Source: Selaginella moellendorffii (taxonomy: Eukaryota; Plantae; Lycopodiophyta). From it: DNA of 64,000 nucleotides. This document shows positions 2,378 to 55,455 of this stretch, one piece after another. The DNA is taken from NCBI RefSeq assembly GCF_000143415.4, contig NW_003314277.1, positions 445,183-509,182 of the forward strand, read 5' to 3'. Both the position numbers and the translations under genes were made by a program. Position 1 is the stretch's first letter, and each line of letters opens with the position of its first letter. A model generated the notes under the pieces. That model did not search any database and had not been told where the DNA came from. It was given only the letters and a program-made list of their open reading frames with translations.

Positions 2378-2451
2378 GGCCTATTAGCTCAGTTGGTCAG
2401 AGCGTGGCTCTAATGAGGCTAAGGTCGCAGGTTCGAAACCTGCATGGGCCA
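2378..2451 (+). tRNA. trnI-AAT: tRNA-Ile (anticodon AAT)
   Basis: GGCCTAT/ATGGGCC acceptor stem, A box TAGCTCAGTTGG, anticodon arm TGGCT-CTAATGA-GGCTA, T arm GCAGG-TTCGAAA-CCTGC, followed by a T5 Pol III terminator at ~2457-2461. Confidence 0.9.
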
Positions 2452-4062: not shown

Positions 4063-6039
4063 ATGGATCCCGCCAGGAGGCTGAGAATTCTCGCGGTCCT
4101 GAGCTGCTGCTGCTGCTGGATTTCGTTTTGTTGCGGATCTATCCATCGCTACCAGCTGAGCCCCTTCAAGCCGTGGGACAATGGCTACACTTTCTTCGGA
4201 GGCAGCGAGGGATTGTATGCGAGCGGGAAGTCTCCGTCACATATCAAGTAAGATTCCTTCGCCCAATTACTTCTAGTGGAAGCATAGATTAAGCTTCTTC
4301 TTTCCAAGCATTCATAGATCTAGAAACTCTTGCCTTTTTTTGTTTGCATTTCCATCGTTAGTGTTTCTTTCTAGCATCCATAGCTCATTGGTCTTTGAGG
4401 TCTACACCTAGATGTAGAAAAAAGGAAGTGTAGAAATAGTGTTTCATTCTTCTTTCCTCAGCATCCATAGCTCATTGGTTTGATCTTGAAGTTAGAAAGA
4501 GAAAGACATTGTCGCCAGTAGTTTAACCTTTCGATCTTCGCAGCTTCAACGTCCAGTTTAGACGAACTGTGGAGTCGGCTGCGAGGCACGAGACGATGGA
4601 GCACAGCACAGGTCTAGTCGAGGCACTCCTTTTCACGCTCGAGGATCGTGACTTCATCGGAGTCACAAACTCCACCGGCGAGAGGATGCTGTGCTGCACT
4701 CCCGAGGCCTCCAAGCTCTCGAATTGCCGCATTGGCGAGGTGATACTTCGCAAGCGTGAAAACGGCTGGCCGAAGACCTTCCAGACGTCCTTCCAAGGCA
4801 ACAAGCTTGTAAACAGCTTCTCCGAGGACGTGAACGTGACCGAGACTGGGCTCTACACGCTCTACTTTGTCTTCTGCGAGCCACAGCTCCAAGGCTTGCA
4901 GATTCGCGGCAGAACGATATGGCAGAGTCCCACAGGCTTTCTTCCGGGGAGGATGGCGCCGCTCCTCAAGTTCTACGGCTACATGTCGCTCGCCTATCTC
5001 GTCCTGGGAGTGATCTGGTTCATCCAGTATGCGCGCTTCTGGAGAGATATCCTCCAGCTCCAGAACTGTATCAGCGTGGTGATCTTCCTGGGACACGCAG
5101 AGATGGCTTTGTGGTACTTCGACTACGCCAACTTCAATGCAACGGGGCGGAGGCCGATGGGGATCACCGCCTGGGCCGTGACCATCGGAGCCATGAGGAA
5201 GACGGTGTCTCGGCTCTTGGTGCTCATAGTTTCTATGGGATACGGGGTGGTGAAACCGACGCTGGGTGGGATCACGAGCAAGGTGTTGCTGTGCGGTGGG
5301 GCGTATTTCGTTGCGATCGAGACTTTGGAGCTGGCGGAGAACGTCCAACGAGTGGATGATTTTTCCAACAAGGAGAAGTTACTTCTGGTGCTTCCAGTTG
5401 CGATCATCGATGCGTTATTCATACTCTGGATTTTTTCCTCGCTGTCCAAGACTCTGGAAAGCCTACAGGTTCTTTCTCTCTTTTCTGTTTTCCTTCCTCT
5501 CGTTTTTGCTCTCAAGGTTTGGACTTACAGGCAAAGAAGCAAACCGCTAAACTGGAACTGTACAAGCGCTTCACCAATTTTCTTGCATTAGCAGTCATAG
5601 CATCAATAGTTTGGATTGGTTACGAGGTATGGCACGTAAGATAGCTTACAATCTCTGGAGGCTGACTCGAATTTTTATTTCCAGTTCTACTTAAAATCTA
5701 CAGAGGCATACAACATCCAGTGGCAAAATGCGTGGGTGGTTTTAGCGTTTTGGATAGTTCTGTCTTATGTCATGCTCTGCGTGATTTGCTACCTATGGAA
5801 GCCATCACAAAACTCCACAAGGTAACAAGATCATGTTTGTGTTATGTTGACTTGAGATTTTTTAAAGGTATGCCTACTCGGAGGAACTTGGCGAAGACTG
5901 TGATCCCGAGGAAGCAATCCAGCTTACTAGCAATATGGATTCATCAAATGGTCGCTTGAACGGTTCTGTAGAGAAAAAGAACACTGAGATAGACGTCTTC
6001 ACACTTGGAACAATTGGAGAAGAAGATAAACGAGACTAA
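4063..6039 (+). CDS. Lung seven-transmembrane receptor / TMEM87-GPR107 family protein (multi-exon)
   Basis: Signal-peptide exon 4063-4247, GT-AG intron 4248-4543 splicing in frame to the large exon (GFLPGRMAPLLKFYG, QNCISVVIFLG, VSMGYGVVKPTLG, WIFSSLSKTLE), further short exons, ending EEDKRD* at 6039. Confidence 0.9.
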
Positions 6040-6318
6040 TGCAATTCAAAAAATCTTTGTTATTTTGATAATTTGCTCGTAGATTTTAGGATTAGCCAAA
6101 TATAGTATTTTAAGGTTTTCTAGGAGATATTTAAATAATATTCTTGTTTTTATTCTTATTATGTCACCTTATAGATCCATGATCAGAGCTTGGAGGGACC
6201 AGAGAGACTTCTGAGGTTGTGAGGGGGAAGTGCATTAATTCCAATCGAAAAAAAGAAAATTTATACTTAAGACATGAAAGTTATTAATTTAAAGCATGAA
6301 GAAAAATAAATATTGAAT

Positions 6319-7164
6319 ATGAAGTGTAAACTCTTAATAATTTTTATTATTTTGTTAATAAAGCTCAATTTTATTATTGCACCTAAGAAGTATACTCCTA
6401 CAATTGGAAGACCAGGAATTTTAAAATTTCAAGATATTACTAAAATAATTGCAGGGGTTAATGGTCTGCTATATAAACTTGATCATAATGGTAAATATCC
6501 TATAACTTATTCAGATGAAGATAGAATATTAACATCTAAAGGATATGTTGATTTGATAGTTAAAGTTAAAGATCAATGTTTACTCAAAGAAACAGTTACA
6601 GAAGTTGTAGGAAATAACATCAAACGTGGAATTGATCGACTTTTAGAACTTAGTAAAGATTATTTATATGAATCACTTTCAGACTATTTTGAAAAAGAAA
6701 GTCAAAATTATCTTATAAGATATAAACTAGATACTACATCAGACGAATTAACATATCAAAATAACATTACAAATTTTGACAATATAAATGGTTGTTATAT
6801 TAGCATAAGTACTTTATTTTCTGATTCAACTTTACATGTTAATAATTTCTTAATATCTCAAAATGGTAAAAATATGTTATTGTTAGAATACAGTTGTAAA
6901 TTAGTCTTATATTCATTAAACCAAAAAATTTGGGAATCAGAACTTAAATCAAATAGTTTTGGTAATTGTTTTCTAATTCTTCAGCAGGATGGCAATTTGG
7001 TTGTTTATTCTAATAAAAAGGCTTTATGGGCTACAGATAAATATTGTAATAACTGTAAATTGTCAACACTATTTTCTGTTCAAAATAACTGTAATTTAGT
7101 GGTCTACCTATCAAAGTTTCCTAATAATGTTTTATGGGCATCAGATAAATTATGTCTACATTAA
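6319..7164 (+). CDS. Secreted protein: signal peptide + unassigned ~130-aa domain (possible barnase/RNase Sa-like fold) + bulb-type (GNA) mannose-binding lectin domain; paralogue 1
   Basis: Intronless ORF from ATG 6319 with hydrophobic N-terminus and lectin motifs LILQQDGNLVVY..ALWAT and VQNNCNLVVY..VLWAS. A colinear intact paralogue lies at 28610-29476. Confidence 0.8.
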   Translation: MKCKLLIIFIILLIKLNFIIAPKKYTPTIGRPGILKFQDITKIIAGVNGLLYKLDHNGKYPITYSDEDRILTSKGYVDLIVKVKDQCLLKETVTEVVGNNIKRGIDRLLELSKDYLYESLSDYFEKESQNYLIRYKLDTTSDELTYQNNITNFDNINGCYISISTLFSDSTLHVNNFLISQNGKNMLLLEYSCKLVLYSLNQKIWESELKSNSFGNCFLILQQDGNLVVYSNKKALWATDKYCNNCKLSTLFSVQNNCNLVVYLSKFPNNVLWASDKLCLH

Positions 7165-7659
7165 ATATAATAAAGATTAATCTTTAAATTTTAAATATAT
7201 AGATTAAGGTTTATAATTTTAAATATAAAAAACATTATCAAGATTTACTGCTATTTTATAATAACTATTTTTTATAATATGTTTTATTTATATATTTCTG
7301 CTTTGTGAAAAATCTTTGTGTCATAAGGCTTATAAAATTTGATATCCTAATGGTTTAGTTATAAATGGGTTTGTTTTTGGCTTTTTTATAACTTATTATA
7401 TTCAACTTAATTTTAATATTTCTATATTTATATGTAACAATAGCACAAAAGTTTTTTAAAAATAATTTGGATTTAAAATTAAATGTATATTTAATGTAAT
7501 TCTTGATTATTAATATATAATTATTTTTTTTGTCCAATTATGATTTACTTTGGTTAATATTATATTAATCAGTTTTACAGCTTTCAATAAGTATTTATTA
7601 AAAGAGATAGTTGTGTTAGTTGTGTATTTTTATGTATATATAAACTATAAGGCCTGTAA

Positions 7660-7660
<1 letters not shown>

Positions 7661-7690
<30 letters not shown>

Positions 7691-7745
7691 CATATATACA
7701 TATATACATATATACATATATACATATATACATATATATATATAT

Positions 7746-7814
<69 letters not shown>

Positions 7815-8043
7815 TATATACATATATACATATATATATACATATATACATATATATATACATATATACATATATATATACATATATACATATATATATA
7901 CATATATACATATATATATACATATATACATATATATATATATACATACATACATATATATATACATATATACATATATATATACATATATACATATATA
8001 TATACATATATACATATATATATACATATATATAGATATATAT

Positions 8044-8120
<77 letters not shown>

Positions 8121-8127
8121 TATATAT
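7661..8127. repeat. Compound (TA)n/(TACA)n microsatellite with 20-bp higher-order unit
   Basis: Pure TA runs flanking repeated CATATATACATATATATATA units. Confidence 0.97.
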
Positions 8128-8138
8128 AACCTTGCTTA

Positions 8139-8770
8139 TGTAATATGCTAATTAAAATACTATAGCATATTCTATCCATTATTGTATATAAGGTTATAAA
8201 CCCCAATTAATATATCTATTATTATATCCCAAGCATTCATATTAGTGGAGGTGAAGGGCACTACAATTTATCCTTGGAAAGCAAAGTTTTTTAGTAGTGC
8301 TTTACTCTAGTATTCAAAATTGTACTTTTATTTTTATTCGTTTTTTTTCTTTTAGCTATTGTTGTGCTTAGATTTGTTCTTCCTTTTGATATTTATTACA
8401 TTCATTAATCAAGAATTTTATCACTTAAGGCTACTAATATTGAGCTTTTGGTGTTGTTCTTTTAATATTTATTGCATTCATCAATCAAGGAGAATATCCC
8501 TTAAGGCTACTAATGTTCAGCTTTTTCGATGTTGTGGAGTGTGATTATATTAATATTGTGCCCATCTTTGGTGTATTATTGTCTCTAGCTTTCAAAAATA
8601 TAATTACATGATTTCTTTTGTTTTTGGCGTTTTGCTCTATTGATATTAAATTTTGCCATCTTCTATTGATATGAAGTGTGATTATGAGCTCAAGTGGATT
8701 CTAGAGTGTGATGATAAATTTAATTATTATAGAAATAGTTTTAGAGATAAGTTAGAGATTTCACGGGGTA
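8139..8770 (+). mobile_element. Heavily decayed LTR retroelement 5' end (LTR end + tRNA-Ala-type PBS)
   Basis: TTAGTGGAGGTGAAGGGCAC (~8242-8261) matches the PBS of the gypsy family at 24008-24026. The preceding LTR-end-like sequence (AAACCCCAATTAATATATCTATT...AGCATTCA) recurs at ~11890-11928. Confidence 0.45.
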
Positions 8771-8780
8771 GGTGTCAATT

Positions 8781-8963
8781 TTTAAACTTTTGAATTTAGA
8801 CTTCCTAAGAGGTCATCCAACCCAGTATTATTCAAACTTAAAAACTCTTAACCCTAAATATCCTAAAACCCTTAATCGATTGGAAAAAGGGTGTACTCTA
8901 CTCTTTCCCTCTATTTGAATCTTTATAGATTATTTCTTGAATCATTTTCTTTAATTGTTTACA
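8781..8963 (-). mobile_element. Solo LTR of Cassandra-like (5S-rRNA-containing) TRIM, decayed
   Basis: Colinear with LTR 22397-22590, including the 5S-derived segment (GACTTCCTAAGAGGTCATCCAACCCAGTATTA). Ends GTTTACA. Flanked by perfect 5-bp TSD CAATT (8776-8780 / 8964-8968). Confidence 0.8.
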
Positions 8964-10289
8964 CAATTCTTCAATTTTCCATTTAATCTTTTCTCTTTAC
9001 TTTTTGCTCTTTTTTTAACTTTTTTTTTTATTTGAGCCACCTTATGTTTTTAATGTTTCTTCCTTATCTACAATGTTTTCTTCTTTAACACATCGATTAT
9101 TTATTACTTTTATGATTCTCATTCTTAGCTTAGTGTTGAGTTGAGTGTTTTCTATCCTCTTTATACTACTCTAAATATTGAGTATAAATATGTGTATAAA
9201 GTTAAAAATTCTATTTTTGTTTTGTTTGCAAAGTTTTTGATTAGTTCTAATGTTAAGTATTCTTATATTCCAAAGGTTGAATCACTTTGGCCAAAATTCC
9301 AAGTTGAATATGTGTACCCATTTGTAAATATTATTTTGTTATTTTGCTTTACTGTTGCTACTAAGGAGTTTATATATTCCCTTGAGAGTATAGATTTTCT
9401 ATTGATTTTCCTGTCTTAATTGGTTAATTGTGTATTGAGGAGGTTGAGCGATATGAATCTTTTGTTTATATTGTCGTAGCTGAAGTATTTTATGACATGA
9501 AGTCTTTTGTTTTCCAAACTTTGAGCATATGTCTTTTTTATTTCCTTATTTTTGTATTGATAGCTATTGAAAATTCCTTTTTTATCCACTTTTTCTTTTT
9601 TCATAATGACTCTTTCTCAATTTTTCTCACTTTCTCATTTTTGCTTTGACACTTCAAACTTTTTTTTCTTTAAAAGAGGGGGTAGAGGGGATGGACAATA
9701 ATTCAACCCCAACAATAGAGTGAGGACAAGTAAATATGATAGTGGAGCAAAGATGAATGACATAGATTGTGGAGTGAGGATAAATATAACGAGTCCAAAT
9801 GAAATAGCCCCAATATAGTAAAGCCAAACGAATGCAATAATAGAGTGAAAAGGAGTATAATAAGAGTTGGTGTTTCAAAATTTTTTTTCCTTCAAAGGGA
9901 TAAAAAGGATGTAGAGGATAAATGGAGTGAATCCAACCTCCCATGTATAGTGCTAAACAAAGATGAAGGTTGATATTGACTAAAGGGAATACGTAAAGGC
10001 AAGTTCTATTTATGATCATGAGTTTGAGTTAATAGTTATTTCAAAAGATTATCAACGAATTGATTTAAAGGCAAAATGTATCATTTGTTGCAATAGCATT
10101 TTATGGATTATAATAGTTTTTAAAGTCTCTTTTTTTAATTCAAAGTTATGGGTTCAAAGTTAGTTTAAACATTTGGTAATTGTATACAGAGTTGTAATTA
10201 GTTCATTGAGATTCTATAATCAATTGATAGTTATCGCATGGCTTTAAGTTTTGTTTCAATCATGGTTGTCAACAACTACATTAGTGGTT

Positions 10290-27852: not shown

Positions 27853-28142
27853 NNNNNNNNNNNNNNNNNNNNNNNNNNNNNNNNNNNNNNNNNNNNNNNN
27901 NNNNNNNNNNNNNNNNNNNNNNNNNNNNNNNNNNNNNNNNNNNNNNNNNNNNNNNNNNNNNNNNNNNNNNNNNNNNNNNNNNNNNNNNNNNNNNNNNNNN
28001 NNNNNNNNNNNNNNNNNNNNNNNNNNNNNNNNNNNNNNNNNNNNNNNNNNNNNNNNNNNNNNNNNNNNNNNNNNNNNNNNNNNNNNNNNNNNNNNNNNNN
28101 NNNNNNNNNNNNNNNNNNNNNNNNNNNNNNNNNNNNNNNNNN
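27853..28142. other. Assembly gap (290 N)
   Basis: Run of n. Confidence 1.
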
Positions 28143-28609
28143 CATGTCATTTGATATTCCCGCGTTCCGATTAGCTTACTATGTAGTAGAGGTTATTCAG
28201 CTAAACTGTCCGTCATTACACCAAACTAAATCTATAATCTCATGTAGAAAAAAGAATTTAGTTTAAGTACTACTGGAAAATTTCTAAAGAATTTAAGAAG
28301 TTCACAATATGAAATTTTCATTAAACAATATTTGCAAAAAAAAATCATAAGTAATTTATTATGGATGTTATATAAACTTTATTACTCATTTTAAGAAACA
28401 CTATTACCATGTAATTTTAGGATAAGCGTTTTATGTGGTATTATTGAGTTTCAAAGACCTTTCAAAAAGGAAATCATTATTTACATACATTTTGTAAGTA
28501 TAGCTTAAGTCATTATTGTGAATAAGAAACTTTAGTAATTTAAAAACTTAAAACTTTAATATTAAAGATTTAGCTTTGTATATTCTTTTATACTTATATA
28601 ATTCTTAAA

Positions 28610-29476
28610 TTAAAATGAACATAGTTTATGGTTGAATGTACCTGATGCCCACAAGATAGTATTAGGAAACTTTGATGAATAAACTACTAAATTACAGTCA
28701 TTTTGAACAGTAAATAATGTTGATAATATACAATTTCTACAATATTTATTTGTAGCCCATAAATGTTTTTTATTAGAATAAATAACTAAATTACCATCAT
28801 ATTGTAATATTAGGAAACAATTATCATAACCTTTTGATGTAATTTCTGATTCCCAAAGTTTTTGCTTTAATGAATATAAAACTATCTTACAACTATATTC
28901 CATCACTAAAACATTTTTACCATTCTGAGAAATTAAAAAATTATTAATATGTAAAGTTGAATCAGAAAATAAAGTACTTATGCTAAGATAGCAAGCATTT
29001 ATACTATCAAAACCAATATTTTGACTTTGATATATTAGTTCATGTGATGTACCATCTAGTTTATATCTTATAAGATAATTTTCACTTTCTTTTTCAAAAT
29101 AATCTGAGAGTGATTCATATAAAATATTTCTACTAAACTGTAAAATTCGATCAATTCCACGTATAATATTATTTCCTATAATTTCTGTAGATTTATCCTT
29201 TAGTGAACATTGATCTTTAACTTTAATTATCAAATCAACATATCCTTGAGATGTTAGTATTCTATCTTCATCAGAAAATGTTACAGGATAATCATAATTA
29301 TGTTGAATTTTATATAATAAGCTATTAACACCCGTAATTATTCTAGTAATATCTTGGTATGTTAAAATTCCTATTCGTCCAAGTTTAGGTGTATATTTTT
29401 TAGGTGCAACAACAAAATCTAGTTTAATTAATAAGATAATGCAAAGAATTAAGAAATAAAACTTTAAAAAGGCCAT
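28610..29476 (-). CDS. Secreted RNase-like(?) domain + bulb-type lectin; paralogue 2
   Basis: Intact ORF from ATG 29476, colinear with 6319-7164 (roughly 70% aa identity by eye); motifs QYDGNLVIY and QNDCNLVVY. Confidence 0.8.
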   Translation of the reverse strand: MAFLKFYFLILCIILLIKLDFVVAPKKYTPKLGRIGILTYQDITRIITGVNSLLYKIQHNYDYPVTFSDEDRILTSQGYVDLIIKVKDQCSLKDKSTEIIGNNIIRGIDRILQFSRNILYESLSDYFEKESENYLIRYKLDGTSHELIYQSQNIGFDSINACYLSISTLFSDSTLHINNFLISQNGKNVLVMEYSCKIVLYSLKQKLWESEITSKGYDNCFLILQYDGNLVIYSNKKHLWATNKYCRNCILSTLFTVQNDCNLVVYSSKFPNTILWASGTFNHKLCSF

Positions 29477-29654
29477 GTTTACTTCTCCCAAAAAACTTTA
29501 TTTTAATGTTAGCTTTTTCTTACTTTTTGTTTTTATTTATAACGATTTTTTTTATGCTAACTTTAGAGAGAAAAAACATATATATAACCCTAAAAAATCC
29601 CTACCTAAAACATCATGTTAAGCAAATCTTCACTAATGCATTTCACTACTGGAA

Positions 29655-30110
29655 GTTGTAGGCCTCTGTAGATTTAAGTAGAACAATATCCTTATGTGCC
29701 ATACTTCGTGACCAATTATACAAACTATTCATGCTATGATTGCTTAGAGCATTGGCAAAGTTCTTGTACAGAAAGCCCCAGGGAACAGAGAAAGAACTTG
29801 CAAGCTTTCCAGAGACTTCGACGGCAAGGAAAAAATCCAGAGTATGAAATAGGCATCGTGGAACTCAAAGTACCAAAAGTAACTTCTCCTTGTTGGGAAA
29901 ACTATGGAGTTGGACCAGTTCCAAAGTCTTGATCTCGCCATAAAATATGCCCACCGCACAGCAAGACCTTGATTGTGATCCCATCCAGCATTGACTTCAC
30001 CATCCCGTATCCCATATAATCTATGAGACCGAAGAGCCGAAAGACAAAAATCTAGCAAGCACCACAAAGCCATCTTAGCAACCACAGGCATTTCTCCGTT
30101 TCTAGAAACT
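29655..30110 (-). pseudogene. Decayed Lung-7TM fragment upstream of lectin paralogue 2
   Basis: Reverse complement matches 5100-5710 (AAGATGGCTTTGTGGT, GGATACGGGATGGTGAAG, TTCTACTTAAATCTACAGAGGC) with deletions. Confidence 0.8.
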
Positions 30111-51845: not shown

Positions 51846-51910
51846 CCAATTCAAATTCGTTTAAATTCTTGCTACCGATTCTAGGTTTCTTGGATTGTAG
51901 GGTTTGGAAG

Positions 51911-54057
51911 ATGGAGTCCTCCTGCACAGCGCGGCCGGATTCCGGGAGCCAGCAGCCAGGTGAGACGTCTGGCTCGGGGCGCAAGGAGAAGCGCAAGGCG
52001 CGGAAGAAGATCAAGCGCAAGAAATGTCGGCAGCGGATTGCCGAGGCGGAGAGGCTGCGAGAAGAGGTGCGGTTACAGGATCCGGAAGAACTGCTCCGAA
52101 TCCGCAAGGCGCTGGAGCTGGAAGCGCAGCGGGAGGAATTGGAGAGGAAATTACACGAGGAGGAGGAAAGGCGCTGGTTGGAGAGAGAGCGGCAAGCGCA
52201 AGAGGAATTCCAGCGCAGGGAACAAGAAAGATTGTCAAAGGTATGAGATTTTGTCTCGTGTCGATGGATTGAGCTCCATTTGTTTGTTTTTTCTTTCGCA
52301 GCAAAAAGAAGTACCTTTGGAGAAGCAAGAAAAGGAAGAAGAAGAAGATGGGGAATATGAAGATGGTCCTGCCGAGATCATCTGGGAAGGAAATGAGATC
52401 ACTATCAGAAAAACTAGAGTTAAAGTAGGAGCCAAGGTGGAGAAGCCGGAAGTAAATACTAAGGAGGTATGGCTCTCTTATCTTTTCGGTTCTCATGTAT
52501 TTATTTATTTTCCATCCTTGTTTATATTCTTGTCATCCAGAGAAAAGATGATAGACCAACTCGCAATCCTTCTCCTCCTCCGCGCTTAGCTTTACCTCGA
52601 AAACAATCTTACGATGGAATCGAACAAGTTGCGAACTATGGTACCGAGCAGGTTTGTAGCGTATTTCCCATGCTGCTACTGTTTTTTACGCTAGATTTTT
52701 TTTTTCCTACGGTGGATGCAGGACAAAACCCACTGCCCCTTCCACACAAAAACTGGAGCTTGCAGATTTGGACCTCGCTGCAGTCGACTTCATGTGTATC
52801 CAGAAAAGTCTTGCACCCTCCTTATCAAGAACATGTACACCGGGCCTGGATTGGCTTGGGAACATGATGAAGGGTTGGAGGTCTGTATGTTTTCTTTTTC
52901 TTTTTCGTGTCTGCATTGTCTCGTCGGTCTGTCCGCATCTTCTTCCACATTAGAATCTTTTTCCTTGACTAAAATTTTCATCAAGCTCGCTACTCGATTG
53001 GTATGGAGAGGCCAAGGGTCTATGTTGGAGGGATTCAAGCCGAATCAAGAAGCTCTGGGAATCTGTATCCTGCTTATATTCTTTTAGTCCTTTTTTTTTT
53101 TATCCTTAACGCTGTTATAGGCATTTGGATGTCGGTACATTCTTGCATATTCATATTCTTTTGAAACAGTGCACGGATGAGGAGATTGAAGAGAAATTCG
53201 AAGAGTTTTACGAAGACGTGCATTCCGAGTTCTTGAAGTTCGGAGAGCTGGTGAATTTTAAGGTTCGTTGTGAAGTTTTGCGTGGCAATCTTAATGTATT
53301 GCTTGGATGTAGGTGTGCCGAAATTCTTCACCGCATTTGCGTGGCAACGTATATGTGCATTATCAGTCCGAAGAGGACGCGGTTGCTGCGTGTCTTGCTT
53401 TGAGTGGAAGATTTTACGCCAGTAAACAGGTATTAGCTCGATATTCCATTTGACCGTTATGTTTGACCTCTGTTTCGGCAGATGATTCCTGAGTTTGTCC
53501 GGGTCTCAAAATGGAAAGCGGCACTTTGCGGAGAGTATATGAAAGCGCATCAGGTGATTTTATATTCCTAGTTTCTGAAGTTTCTGTTTCCTTGACTGTC
53601 GTTGTGCTCTTTGTAGACGTGCTCCCGGGGCACAGCGTGCAATTTCCTTCACTGCTTTAGAAACCCGGGTGGTGAGTACGAGTGGGCAGACCGGGAAGGT
53701 CCGCCGCCGAGGTCATGGAAGCAGAAGATGGCCAGTCTTTTCGGTCTCCAAGTTGAAGAGGTTGAGAGCAGGAGCAGGAGAGATCACCAAAGACGGGACA
53801 AGGAGCAGCGTTCTGATCATCGCAGGCACTCGCACTCTAGTCGAGAGAATGGAAGAAGGTATGATCAGGCGAGAGGAAGTTCGTACAGGTCGGAGCGAAG
53901 TCATCACTCGGGTGAAAATGATAGAAAACACAGGAAACGGGAAGAGGATGGATCTGACAGGGATAGGAAACGGTCGTGTCGATCCGACAGGGGCAGCAGG
54001 AATGGATTAGATTTGGAGAGGACCGATGATGATGATGGTGGCCGCTGGCTAGATTGA
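51911..54057 (+). CDS. ZRSR2: U2AF35-related protein ZRSR2/URP/RGH3 (CCCH-UHM-CCCH-RS)
   Basis: Coiled-coil N-terminus; [20 protein letters not shown]; IKNMY...[20 protein letters not shown]; [10 protein letters not shown]; second CCCH ([18 protein letters not shown]); RS/RD-rich tail. Confidence 0.92.
53065..53120 (+). promoter_or_regulatory. U12-type (minor) intron signature nested within U2 intron 52881-53169 of ZRSR2
   Basis: 5' site GTATCCTG; branch point TCCTTAAC at 53103-53110; AG at 53119-53120. Confidence 0.7.
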
Positions 54058-54258
54058 TAGTGCTGTGCATGGCAAACGTACGTGGCAAGCTGCAAGGACT
54101 TAAACTTTGGTTGGCGCGCGGTAAATAGTCACAGTGGCCGTCGATTTAGAATCGGATGGGCGGCTTGTAGGAGAGGCTGGGTTATGGTGGGTTAGAAAAG
54201 GAGGAGATCGTAGCCGAAAAGCATAGGGTATATAAAAGCATGAAGGTTTTTTCCAGTG

Positions 54259-55455
54259 ATGCCCGCTAAGAAAAGAGGAAAGGGTAAGAAATCGAAGAAG
54301 GCGAGCCCGAAAGCAGCAGCAGCAGCAGCAGCCAAGCCGCCCAAGACTCCAGCGGCAAAAGGTAGCACAGCGTCTGGTAGCAAGAGAAAGGCCAAGGAGG
54401 TTCTGGCAGTGAGCGTGCCGAGGAGGGTGTCACCGAGACTTTTGGCGAAGCGGAAGATGCAGCAGCAGGAGAACGGGTTTGGGAGCCACGAAGAGGCGCT
54501 GGGGATGATCACTCTACCGGTGGACAACGATGAGGAGGTGCACGACCACCGCGGGATCAGCAGCAACTCCAACCGGCTCAAGCCGAGCTCCTCCACCAGG
54601 ATCACCAAGGACAAGGCGGAGCGGTCGCAGGACGCGTCCGAGGACGCTGGCGGAGGAGTGGCCGCGGACGAGGCAGTGGAAGCAAACGTTGGCGGAGGAG
54701 GAGAAGAGAGCGGCGACGAGGAGGAGGATATGGATCAGATGCTTTTCGAGCGAGGAACCGGTCCGAGAAAGGAGCTGGCGGTGGGGAGGATCATCGTCCA
54801 GGAGGAGCTCAAGGAGGCGGAGGAGACGCTGAGCGGGCACGCGGTGCTGCTCTACTTCTGGCGGATGGAGGTGACCATGACGTGCGATCTGGCCGAGGAG
54901 TGGATCCGCAACGCGCTGGGCGACGCCGAGGCGATCGGCCACGTCCAGCACTGCCGGGACCTGGGCCGCGGCTTCTTCCTGGTGTTGTTCGAGCTGGCCA
55001 TCGCGCGGCGCAAGGCGCTGGCGTTCAAGCCCCGCCCTTTCGGCATCCAGGTGAGCGTCTTCCCGTGGTGCCCGGCCACCGTGAACGACGAGGGCGAGCA
55101 GTGCGCGCCGCGGATGATCGTCCTCCCGGGGCTGCCGGACCAGTGCTTGTTCGTCCTGCCCAAGATCGCGAGGTCGCTGGGGAGCTTCATCGGGTGCGTT
55201 AGCGGGCGGCCGAAGAAGGAGGCGGTGCGCGGCGAGGAGGGGTTCGCCGCCACCCCGGCCTGCGCAAAGGGGGCGGCCCGGATCGCGGTGATGATCCCGC
55301 CCGAGCTGAGCATTCCGGCCACGATCGAGATCCAGCTGCGGACCGGGGTGTGTAAGAAGCAGCCGATCTACGAGGAGGAGGAGGTGGGGAGAGGGCGGAA
55401 GAGAGTGGCGGCGGCGGCGGCGGCTGGGCGGGCGGCGAAGAAGCTCAAGAACTGA
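54259..55455 (+). CDS. DUF4283 (plant LINE ORF1-like) domain protein with basic N-terminus
   Basis: Intronless 398-aa ORF with CRDLGRGFFLVLF, VFPW, VLPGLPDQCL..LPKIARSLGSFI and ARIAV; TATATAAA ~25 nt upstream. Confidence 0.7.
   Translation: MPAKKRGKGKKSKKASPKAAAAAAAKPPKTPAAKGSTASGSKRKAKEVLAVSVPRRVSPRLLAKRKMQQQENGFGSHEEALGMITLPVDNDEEVHDHRGISSNSNRLKPSSSTRITKDKAERSQDASEDAGGGVAADEAVEANVGGGGEESGDEEEDMDQMLFERGTGPRKELAVGRIIVQEELKEAEETLSGHAVLLYFWRMEVTMTCDLAEEWIRNALGDAEAIGHVQHCRDLGRGFFLVLFELAIARRKALAFKPRPFGIQVSVFPWCPATVNDEGEQCAPRMIVLPGLPDQCLFVLPKIARSLGSFIGCVSGRPKKEAVRGEEGFAATPACAKGAARIAVMIPPELSIPATIEIQLRTGVCKKQPIYEEEEVGRGRKRVAAAAAAGRAAKKLKN

Follow-up and report, generated by a model that had tools for sequence, protein, structure and literature searches.

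The fourth intron of a gene that by sequence is the plant orthologue of the minor-spliceosome factor ZRSR2 (also called URP or RGH3) is composite. The gene lies on the plus strand of a 64-kb stretch of Selaginella moellendorffii DNA, hereafter the window, and the intron holds a short non-coding cassette exon and a U12-type GT-AG intron nested inside the U2-type intron that is removed to make the productive message. The splice signals, the stop codons to which they lead and their conservation from liverworts to flowering plants are all observed. On this basis we consider it probable that the intron acts as a switch, in which skipping the internal signals gives a productive mRNA and use of the U12 pathway gives a dead-end mRNA, forming a homeostatic negative feedback. 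Use of the signals in this species, nonsense-mediated decay (NMD) of the resulting message and the feedback itself are proposed rather than observed, the feedback from the known function of the gene and from the precedents of dUrp, USSE and CENATAC described below. An earlier annotation made from the letters alone (the sequence-only reading) had placed a U12 intron and a poison cassette within the U2 intron whose removal gives the productive message of a ZRSR2 gene, and that anatomy is right.

Three-frame reading of 51850–54100 gives a single consistent plus-strand model with GT-AG borders, which runs from the ATG at 51911 to a TGA and encodes 495 amino acids (aa) in eight exons. Intron 4 spans 289 nt against 61, 74, 70, 50, 52 and 63 nt for the other six, bearing out the sequence-only remark that 52881–53169 is far longer than its neighbours (50–74 nt). 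Each of the seven introns is phase 0, which means that leaving out any one of exons 2 to 7 would keep the frame. In relatives, some predicted isoforms skip exons of the UHM, joining ...VNFK to ITCEF... (P0005, P0017, P0024) or EGLE to VTCEF... (P0012).

The predicted protein has the architecture of a ZRSR2 orthologue, with an N-terminal extension, a CCCH zinc finger, the RRM-like UHM, a second CCCH finger and an Arg/Ser-rich tail. Pfam, run on single exons with no joined spliced model searched, finds zf-CCCH in exon 4 (E = 4e-7), a weak RRM_1 match in exon 6 and a weak zf-CCCH match in exon 8; this last exon carries the end of the second finger, followed by an Arg/Ser/Asp-rich tail. The Marchantia URP (P0212) aligns by tblastn over the N-terminal region (exon 1), the UHM and both fingers, with 80% identity at finger 1, and the same domain order was found with the Brachypodium and Ceratopteris orthologues. 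With exon 4 as query, an exhaustive HMMER search returned plant proteins of 490–980 aa, 77–87% identical over 53 aa. The relatives are named C3H5 or C3H16 (zinc finger CCCH domain-containing protein 5 or 16), ‘U2 snRNP auxiliary factor 35 kDa subunit-related protein’ (Marchantia) and ‘RGH3 splicing factor’ (Striga). Identity to a protein named U2AF small subunit is 72% over 39 aa, below the 77–87% seen with C3H5, C3H16 and URP. By pairwise identity, 51911–54057 is the plant ZRSR2/URP/RGH3 orthologue and is nearer to URP than to U2AF35.

The outer donor of intron 4 (gag/GTCTGT, the slash marking the splice border) is weak, with a pyrimidine at +3, and this GTYTGT form is conserved across land plants. 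Internal signals were judged as U12-type by a 5′ splice site /RTATCCTT without AG at −2/−1, a branch site TTCCTTRAY and a branch-to-acceptor distance of about 10–15 nt. The internal donor, aatcT/GTATCCTGC, with its core GTATCCTG at 53065–53072, matches the consensus at seven of eight positions and has T at −1, no AG at −2/−1 and G at +8. Downstream, the branch site TATCCTTAAC at 53101–53110 contains the exact 8-mer TCCTTAAC, and its branch A (53109) lies 11 nt from G 53120. Both the donor at 53065 and a branch site near AG 53120 had been called from the letters alone, and both are present at those positions. For the cassette acceptor, which the same reading had described as a U2-like AG at 52985, the position stands and the description can be refined: AG 52984–85 is preceded by a U12-like branch site, TTCCTTGAC, and in flowering plants the site is the acceptor of a second U12 intron. 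The stretch 53121–53169 contains no usable U2 donor, since the GT at 53135 would leave an intron of 35 nt.

Several other candidate signals were considered. A second U12 donor, of the kind found in flowering plants, was sought at 52881–52960; none fits the consensus there, the best match being GTATGTTTT at 52885. In exon 4, GTATCCAG (52797–52804) resembles a U12 donor core and was rejected as one, because the codons Val-Tyr-Pro-Glu account for the string; Val-Tyr-Pro also stands at this site in fern relatives, and Phe-Tyr-Pro in most flowering-plant relatives. The degenerate string ATATTCTTT that follows the U12 donor is not conserved as such in other lineages. The predicted RNA fold of intron 4 is unremarkable (z +1.7). 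Coordinates are collected in Table 1.

Table 1. Features of the ZRSR2 orthologue and of its composite intron 4 (window coordinates; slashes mark splice borders)
Feature	Position	Strand	Description
Gene exons 1–8	51911–52240, 52302–52466, 52541–52651, 52722–52880, 53170–53262, 53313–53429, 53482–53553, 53617–54057	+	From reading frames and GT-AG borders
Exon 4	52722–52880	+	First CCCH zinc finger and start of UHM; ends ...DEGLE
Productive U2-type intron 4	52881–53169	+	289 nt; borders gag/GTCTGTAT ... AAACAG/tgc
Cassette acceptor	52961–52985	+	Branch site TTCCTTGAC (52961–69, A 52968), 17 nt to AG 52984–85
Poison cassette exon	52986–53064	+	79 nt; non-coding, not frame-preserving, purine/G-rich
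U12-type GT-AG 5′ splice site	53065–53073	+	T/GTATCCTGC; purine at +8, T at −1
Nested U12 intron	53065–53120	+	56 nt
Degenerate second 5′ splice-site-like string	53076–53084	+	ATATTCTTT; 11 nt after the first; significance doubtful
U12 branch site and 3′ splice site	53103–53120	+	TCCTTAAC at 53103–53110, A 53109; AG 53119–20
Stretch exonic when U12 intron is used	53121–53169	+	49 nt; in-frame stop TGA 53162–64
Exon 5	53170–53262	+	Continuation of UHM in the productive mRNA

The combination of signals is rare. The composite pattern GTATCCT-N25-55-TCCTTRAY-N8-13-AG, searched on both strands of the window (128 kb), occurs once against 0.01 expected from 100 dinucleotide shuffles; in the same 128 kb, GTATCCT occurs three times and TCCTTAAC twice. 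Across seven orthologous introns, the only 7- and 8-mers common to all overlap TGTATCCTG, and multiplying the chance probabilities of GTATCCT over these introns gives ~2e-9. The motifs thus co-occur far beyond chance: each genomic plant locus examined has the motif in its orthologous intron. An accidental meeting of motifs in a long AT-rich intron might be entertained, given that each motif is short and that the branch-site 8-mer type is found in an ordinary intron too. Set against these figures, and against the conservation and splicing described next, it has almost no probability, and the comparative data already refute it.

The orthologous intron was located after ...EGLE and before.TDEE..FYEDV in two Thalictrum paralogues (L001, L004), Citrus (L005), Marchantia (L006), Amborella (L007) and Brachypodium (L008). 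Further introns came from ENA/JGI contigs (L002, L003, L009) and from 38 plant contigs found in a metagenome scan with a degenerate coding pattern (L010–L047); by blastx these further contigs include panicoid grasses, Salicaceae, legumes, a fern (91% to Adiantum) and a bryophyte. One order of elements is common to every genomic-like locus for which enough sequence exists: the weak outer donor G/GTYTGT, a branch site with CAG, the cassette, T/GTATCCTR, a TCCTTRAC-type branch site and AG. This order is found in Marchantia, in moss-like (L009, L017, L043, L045) and fern-like (L003, L044) contigs, in Amborella, Brachypodium, both Thalictrum paralogues and Citrus, and in about ten further angiosperm groups from metagenomes. 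The cassette measures 65–83 nt, and its donor has T at −1, in 17 of 17 loci measured. The TCCTTRAC-type branch site lies 10–13 nt before the AG, except in the fern-like contigs, where the best branch-site match, TTTCCTTAAT, has no AG within 9–15 nt (L003, 551–580; L044, 363 nt into the intron). In alignment A1 the branch site and CAG of the cassette acceptor are conserved in all lineages, and outside the shared elements the intron does not align between lineages. The cassette itself is not protein-coding, because its length modulo 3 varies (0, 1 and 2) and it contains stops in several lineages.

Aligning orthologous introns across land plants was the check that the sequence-only reading had put forward, and the motifs prove to be conserved from liverworts to flowering plants. 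Its suspicion that the arrangement is very old is likewise borne out for land plants, as the elements keep one place in the gene across liverwort, moss-like, fern-like, basal-angiosperm, eudicot and grass loci, the grasses being the family to which maize Rgh3 belongs. Many fragments of relatives called as open reading frames (ORFs) run into the intron (...EGLE-VC), and gene predictors often mis-call exons in the orthologues of intron 4.

Flowering plants, Amborella included, have an extra GTATCCT 18–34 nt past the outer donor, which is absent from the liverwort, from the bryophyte-like and fern-like contigs and from the window. Three GTATCCT sites in the intron (e.g., +33, +197 and +801) occur in the Salicaceae-like contigs L022, L024 and L025 and their relatives and in the legume-like L013 and L014. 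Since it has been proposed that U12-to-U2 conversion passes through nested U12 and U2 introns (PMC8329584), the element might be viewed as a neutral relic, in which one or more ancestral U12 introns and a once-coding exon are bypassed by a U2 intron and have no regulatory role. Against such a history stand the retention, across the whole range of liverworts to flowering plants, of all signals, the weak outer donor and the length of the cassette in an intron otherwise unalignable, and the gain of a second U12 donor in angiosperms; we regard it as improbable.

Splicing at the orthologous sites is recorded in two contigs, L018 (grass) and L019 (eudicot), which derive from spliced RNA, as they lack the upstream introns. 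L018 is 99–100% identical to the genomic contig L016, and its junction ...gatctgctcat/taactggg... removes exactly 144 nt of L016, from GTATCCTAAAC to CTCCTTGAC-N12-AG; a second extra exon of 78 nt and then a U2 intron follow the U12 junction. L019, compared with the genomic contig L030, carries exon 4 extended by 30 nt, then a removed intron (GTATCCTGATAA...TTCTTTAAC-10-CAG), a 74-nt cassette, a second removed intron (GTATCCTACC...TTTTCCTAAAT...ACAG), an exon of 101 nt, a U2 intron and exon 5, and its frame meets a stop. Both U12 introns of L030 are exactly missing from L019, and the cassette acceptor is thereby the acceptor of a U12 intron in this eudicot RNA contig. From these junctions it follows that in flowering plants a U12-type intron borders the cassette on either side. 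Actual splicing of the orthologous U12 introns is seen in two flowering plants, one grass and one eudicot.

These junctions also bear on a different role for the internal 5′ splice site, namely that U11/U12 bound to GTATCCT only enhances the upstream acceptor and that the site is not itself a donor, as in the USSE, an enhancer of splicing to which the U11 snRNP (small nuclear ribonucleoprotein) binds. The distance from acceptor to U12 donor is held at 65–83 nt, as reported for the USSE (PMC8329584), and the degenerate string at 53076 could be read as a second 5′ splice site. However, a U12 branch site 10–13 nt from an AG is conserved downstream, the orthologous sites act as donors in L018 and L019, and the window has a single consensus site and no true tandem repeat. 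A purely enhancing role is therefore quite unlikely. The two ideas are compatible, as exon definition by U11 belongs to the composite-intron explanation itself.

The consequences for the message in the window were read from the frames. Inclusion of the cassette with removal of the U12 intron adds 40 codons and then reaches TGA 53162–64, as the sequence-only reading had predicted for inclusion of 52986–53064. Use of the cassette acceptor with the U12 intron kept leads to TAG 53085–87, retention of the whole of intron 4 leads to the same TAG, and inclusion of the cassette alone gives a stop after 29 codons. Every splice choice but full skipping (four tested) thus ends in an early stop. The poison isoform, with its 128 extra nt, would code for at most the N-terminal region and finger 1. 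TGA 53162–64 sits 98 nt upstream of the end of exon 5 (53262), with two more introns beyond, which exceeds the 50-nt distance used as a criterion for NMD, and the isoform is a likely NMD target as judged from its sequence.

The isoforms might instead be made for their proteins, either a truncated N-terminal and finger-1 protein or a UHM-finger2-RS protein started within the cassette. An ATG at 53003–05 of the cassette is in frame with exon 5 after removal of the U12 intron and would open a UHM-finger2-RS ORF that has neither the N-terminus nor finger 1. Splicing at GT 53135 would give a total insert of 93 nt, open and in frame, and in Marchantia an open insert of 126 nt is allowed by a GTGTAAGG donor. 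The first of these inserts is unlikely, because it needs a 35-nt intron, shorter than any in the gene, and both are probably coincidence, because the moss-like locus gives no comparable or consistent option. Moreover, the cassette is not conserved as protein, with its varying length and its stops in several orthologues, and L018 and L019 run into stops. Production of protein isoforms is accordingly an unlikely purpose of the element.

We return to the composite intron as a feedback switch. ZRSR2/Urp, a component of the U11/U12 di-snRNP, is the factor that recognises the U12-type 3′ splice site (PMC3584512). When the internal signals are unengaged, the major spliceosome would remove all 289 nt by way of the weak outer donor and the exon 5 acceptor, giving the productive mRNA. 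When U11/U12 with ZRSR2 occupies the internal 5′ splice site (53065) and branch site (53103), the 79-nt cassette would be defined and the 56-nt U12 intron (53065–53120) cut out, leaving an mRNA with a stop 98 nt before the next junction that should be degraded. As ZRSR2 recognises U12 3′ splice sites, high activity of the minor spliceosome or of ZRSR2 should therefore divert more pre-mRNA to the dead-end form. The conserved suboptimal features, namely the +3 pyrimidine of the outer donor and the +8 purine of the U12 donor, would render the choice sensitive to dosage. The window has no U12-type donor ahead of the cassette acceptor, so exon 4 would be joined to the cassette by a U2-type donor, or the upstream part would stay unspliced as in L018; either route gives an unproductive product.

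Several points weigh against this proposal. The donor paired with the cassette acceptor is not U12-like in this species, so that cassette inclusion may not strictly need the minor spliceosome. The U12 donor has G rather than the consensus T at +8, and 56 nt is short for a U12 intron. The branch-site motif fits the U2 consensus too, the same 8-mer type being present in the ordinary intron 7. A word search with exon 8 gave no match in RNA of the window species.

Elsewhere in the window, a tRNA gene at 2378–2451 (+) is the only Rfam match at gathering score. G+C content is very low at 6001–10000 and 28001–30000 (0.21–0.27) and otherwise 0.35–0.63. A GC-rich single-exon ORF of 398 aa at 54259–55455 (+) lies directly 3′ of the ZRSR2 gene, and an exact look-up of its product found no record.

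A standing question is what sets the minor spliceosome's low, rate-limiting activity in cells, and the known feedback elements are few and mostly studied in animals. If the proposal is true, intron 4 would offer plant biology a directly testable homeostat and a natural case of cross-talk between the two spliceosomes, and the same circuit would have evolved convergently in plants and flies.

SR and other splicing-factor genes contain conserved poison exons that couple alternative splicing to NMD and whose recognition depends on the major spliceosome and on binding sites for the factor itself. The plant element resembles them in being a non-coding cassette with conserved splice sites that places a stop in a splicing factor's own mRNA, and differs in being bounded by minor-spliceosome signals. 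Maize Rgh3, the orthologous gene, reportedly yields at least 19 variants, of which one is full length. Its grass orthologues (Brachypodium and the panicoid contigs) carry the U12 cassette, and one grass RNA contig uses the cassette's U12 donor. In the searchable full-text literature, neither a U12 intron nor a poison exon is described for plant ZRSR2/URP/RGH3; Fouquet 2011 and Gault 2017 lie outside that scope and may already describe the isoforms in part.

A 2021 review names only dUrp, USSE and CENATAC as known circuits of this kind. The closest is Drosophila dUrp (CG3294), where U2 and U12 introns overlap and the U12 donor lies 29 nt past the U2 donor. In its U12 isoform translation ends prematurely (314 vs 456 aa), and NMD mutants stabilise this isoform 1.4–1.8-fold; the twintron has been proposed as a minor-spliceosome feedback and, among the animals studied, described as absent outside Diptera (Lin et al. 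2010, PMC2831892; Turunen et al. 2013, PMC3584512). The plant element shares with it the gene family (ZRSR2/Urp), a U12-type intron overlapping a productive U2 intron and a U12 isoform with a premature stop, and the fly donor at 29 nt resembles the extra flowering-plant donor at +18 to +34. A donor of this dUrp type is found in angiosperm orthologues and not in the window, whose only U12 donor is 184 nt downstream, behind the cassette. The fly element, moreover, shifts both splice sites by about 30 nt, has no cassette and is confined to Diptera, whereas the plant element has a separate conserved cassette of 65–83 nt and spans land plants. The dUrp stop at residue 314 of 456 suggests a later intron than the plant one, and the two elements are likely of independent origin.

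The USSE of SNRNP48 (U11-48K) and RNPC3 (U11/U12-65K) (Verbeeren 2010; Niemela 2015; reviewed in PMC8329584 and PMC5473595) likewise has the sequence of a U12-type 5′ splice site in a minor-spliceosome gene, outside its coding parts, with an acceptor upstream at a conserved distance and an unproductive isoform, and its feedback is conserved in plants and animals. The plant ZRSR2 element holds a comparable distance, 65–83 nt to the upstream acceptor, in all lineages. Unlike the USSE, which is a tandem repeat unused as a donor, it has just one such site, accompanied by a branch site and an acceptor of its own, and the orthologous sites are spliced. CENATAC, with competing U2 and U12 5′ splice sites (de Wolf 2021, reviewed in PMC8329584), is again a minor-spliceosome factor gene with conserved sites, where the U12 pathway leads to a stop and where autoregulation has been proposed; it differs in having the competing donors of one intron, in animals, and no nested cassette.

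From these circuits the plant element differs in architecture, being a conserved cassette with one or two real U12 introns at its borders, all within a U2 intron, and in depth, as it spans all land plants sampled. Taken as a whole, the evidence leaves evenly balanced a more far-reaching proposal: that ZRSR2 of all land plants has carried for some 470 million years a sensor made of a non-coding exon with one U12 intron (non-seed plants) or two (flowering plants), whose use kills the mRNA, so that minor-spliceosome activity would set the level of its own 3′-splice-site factor. No known U12-dependent autoregulatory exon would then be more deeply conserved, the many unproductive isoforms of maize Rgh3 would be explained, and the sensor would stand as the convergent plant counterpart of dUrp.

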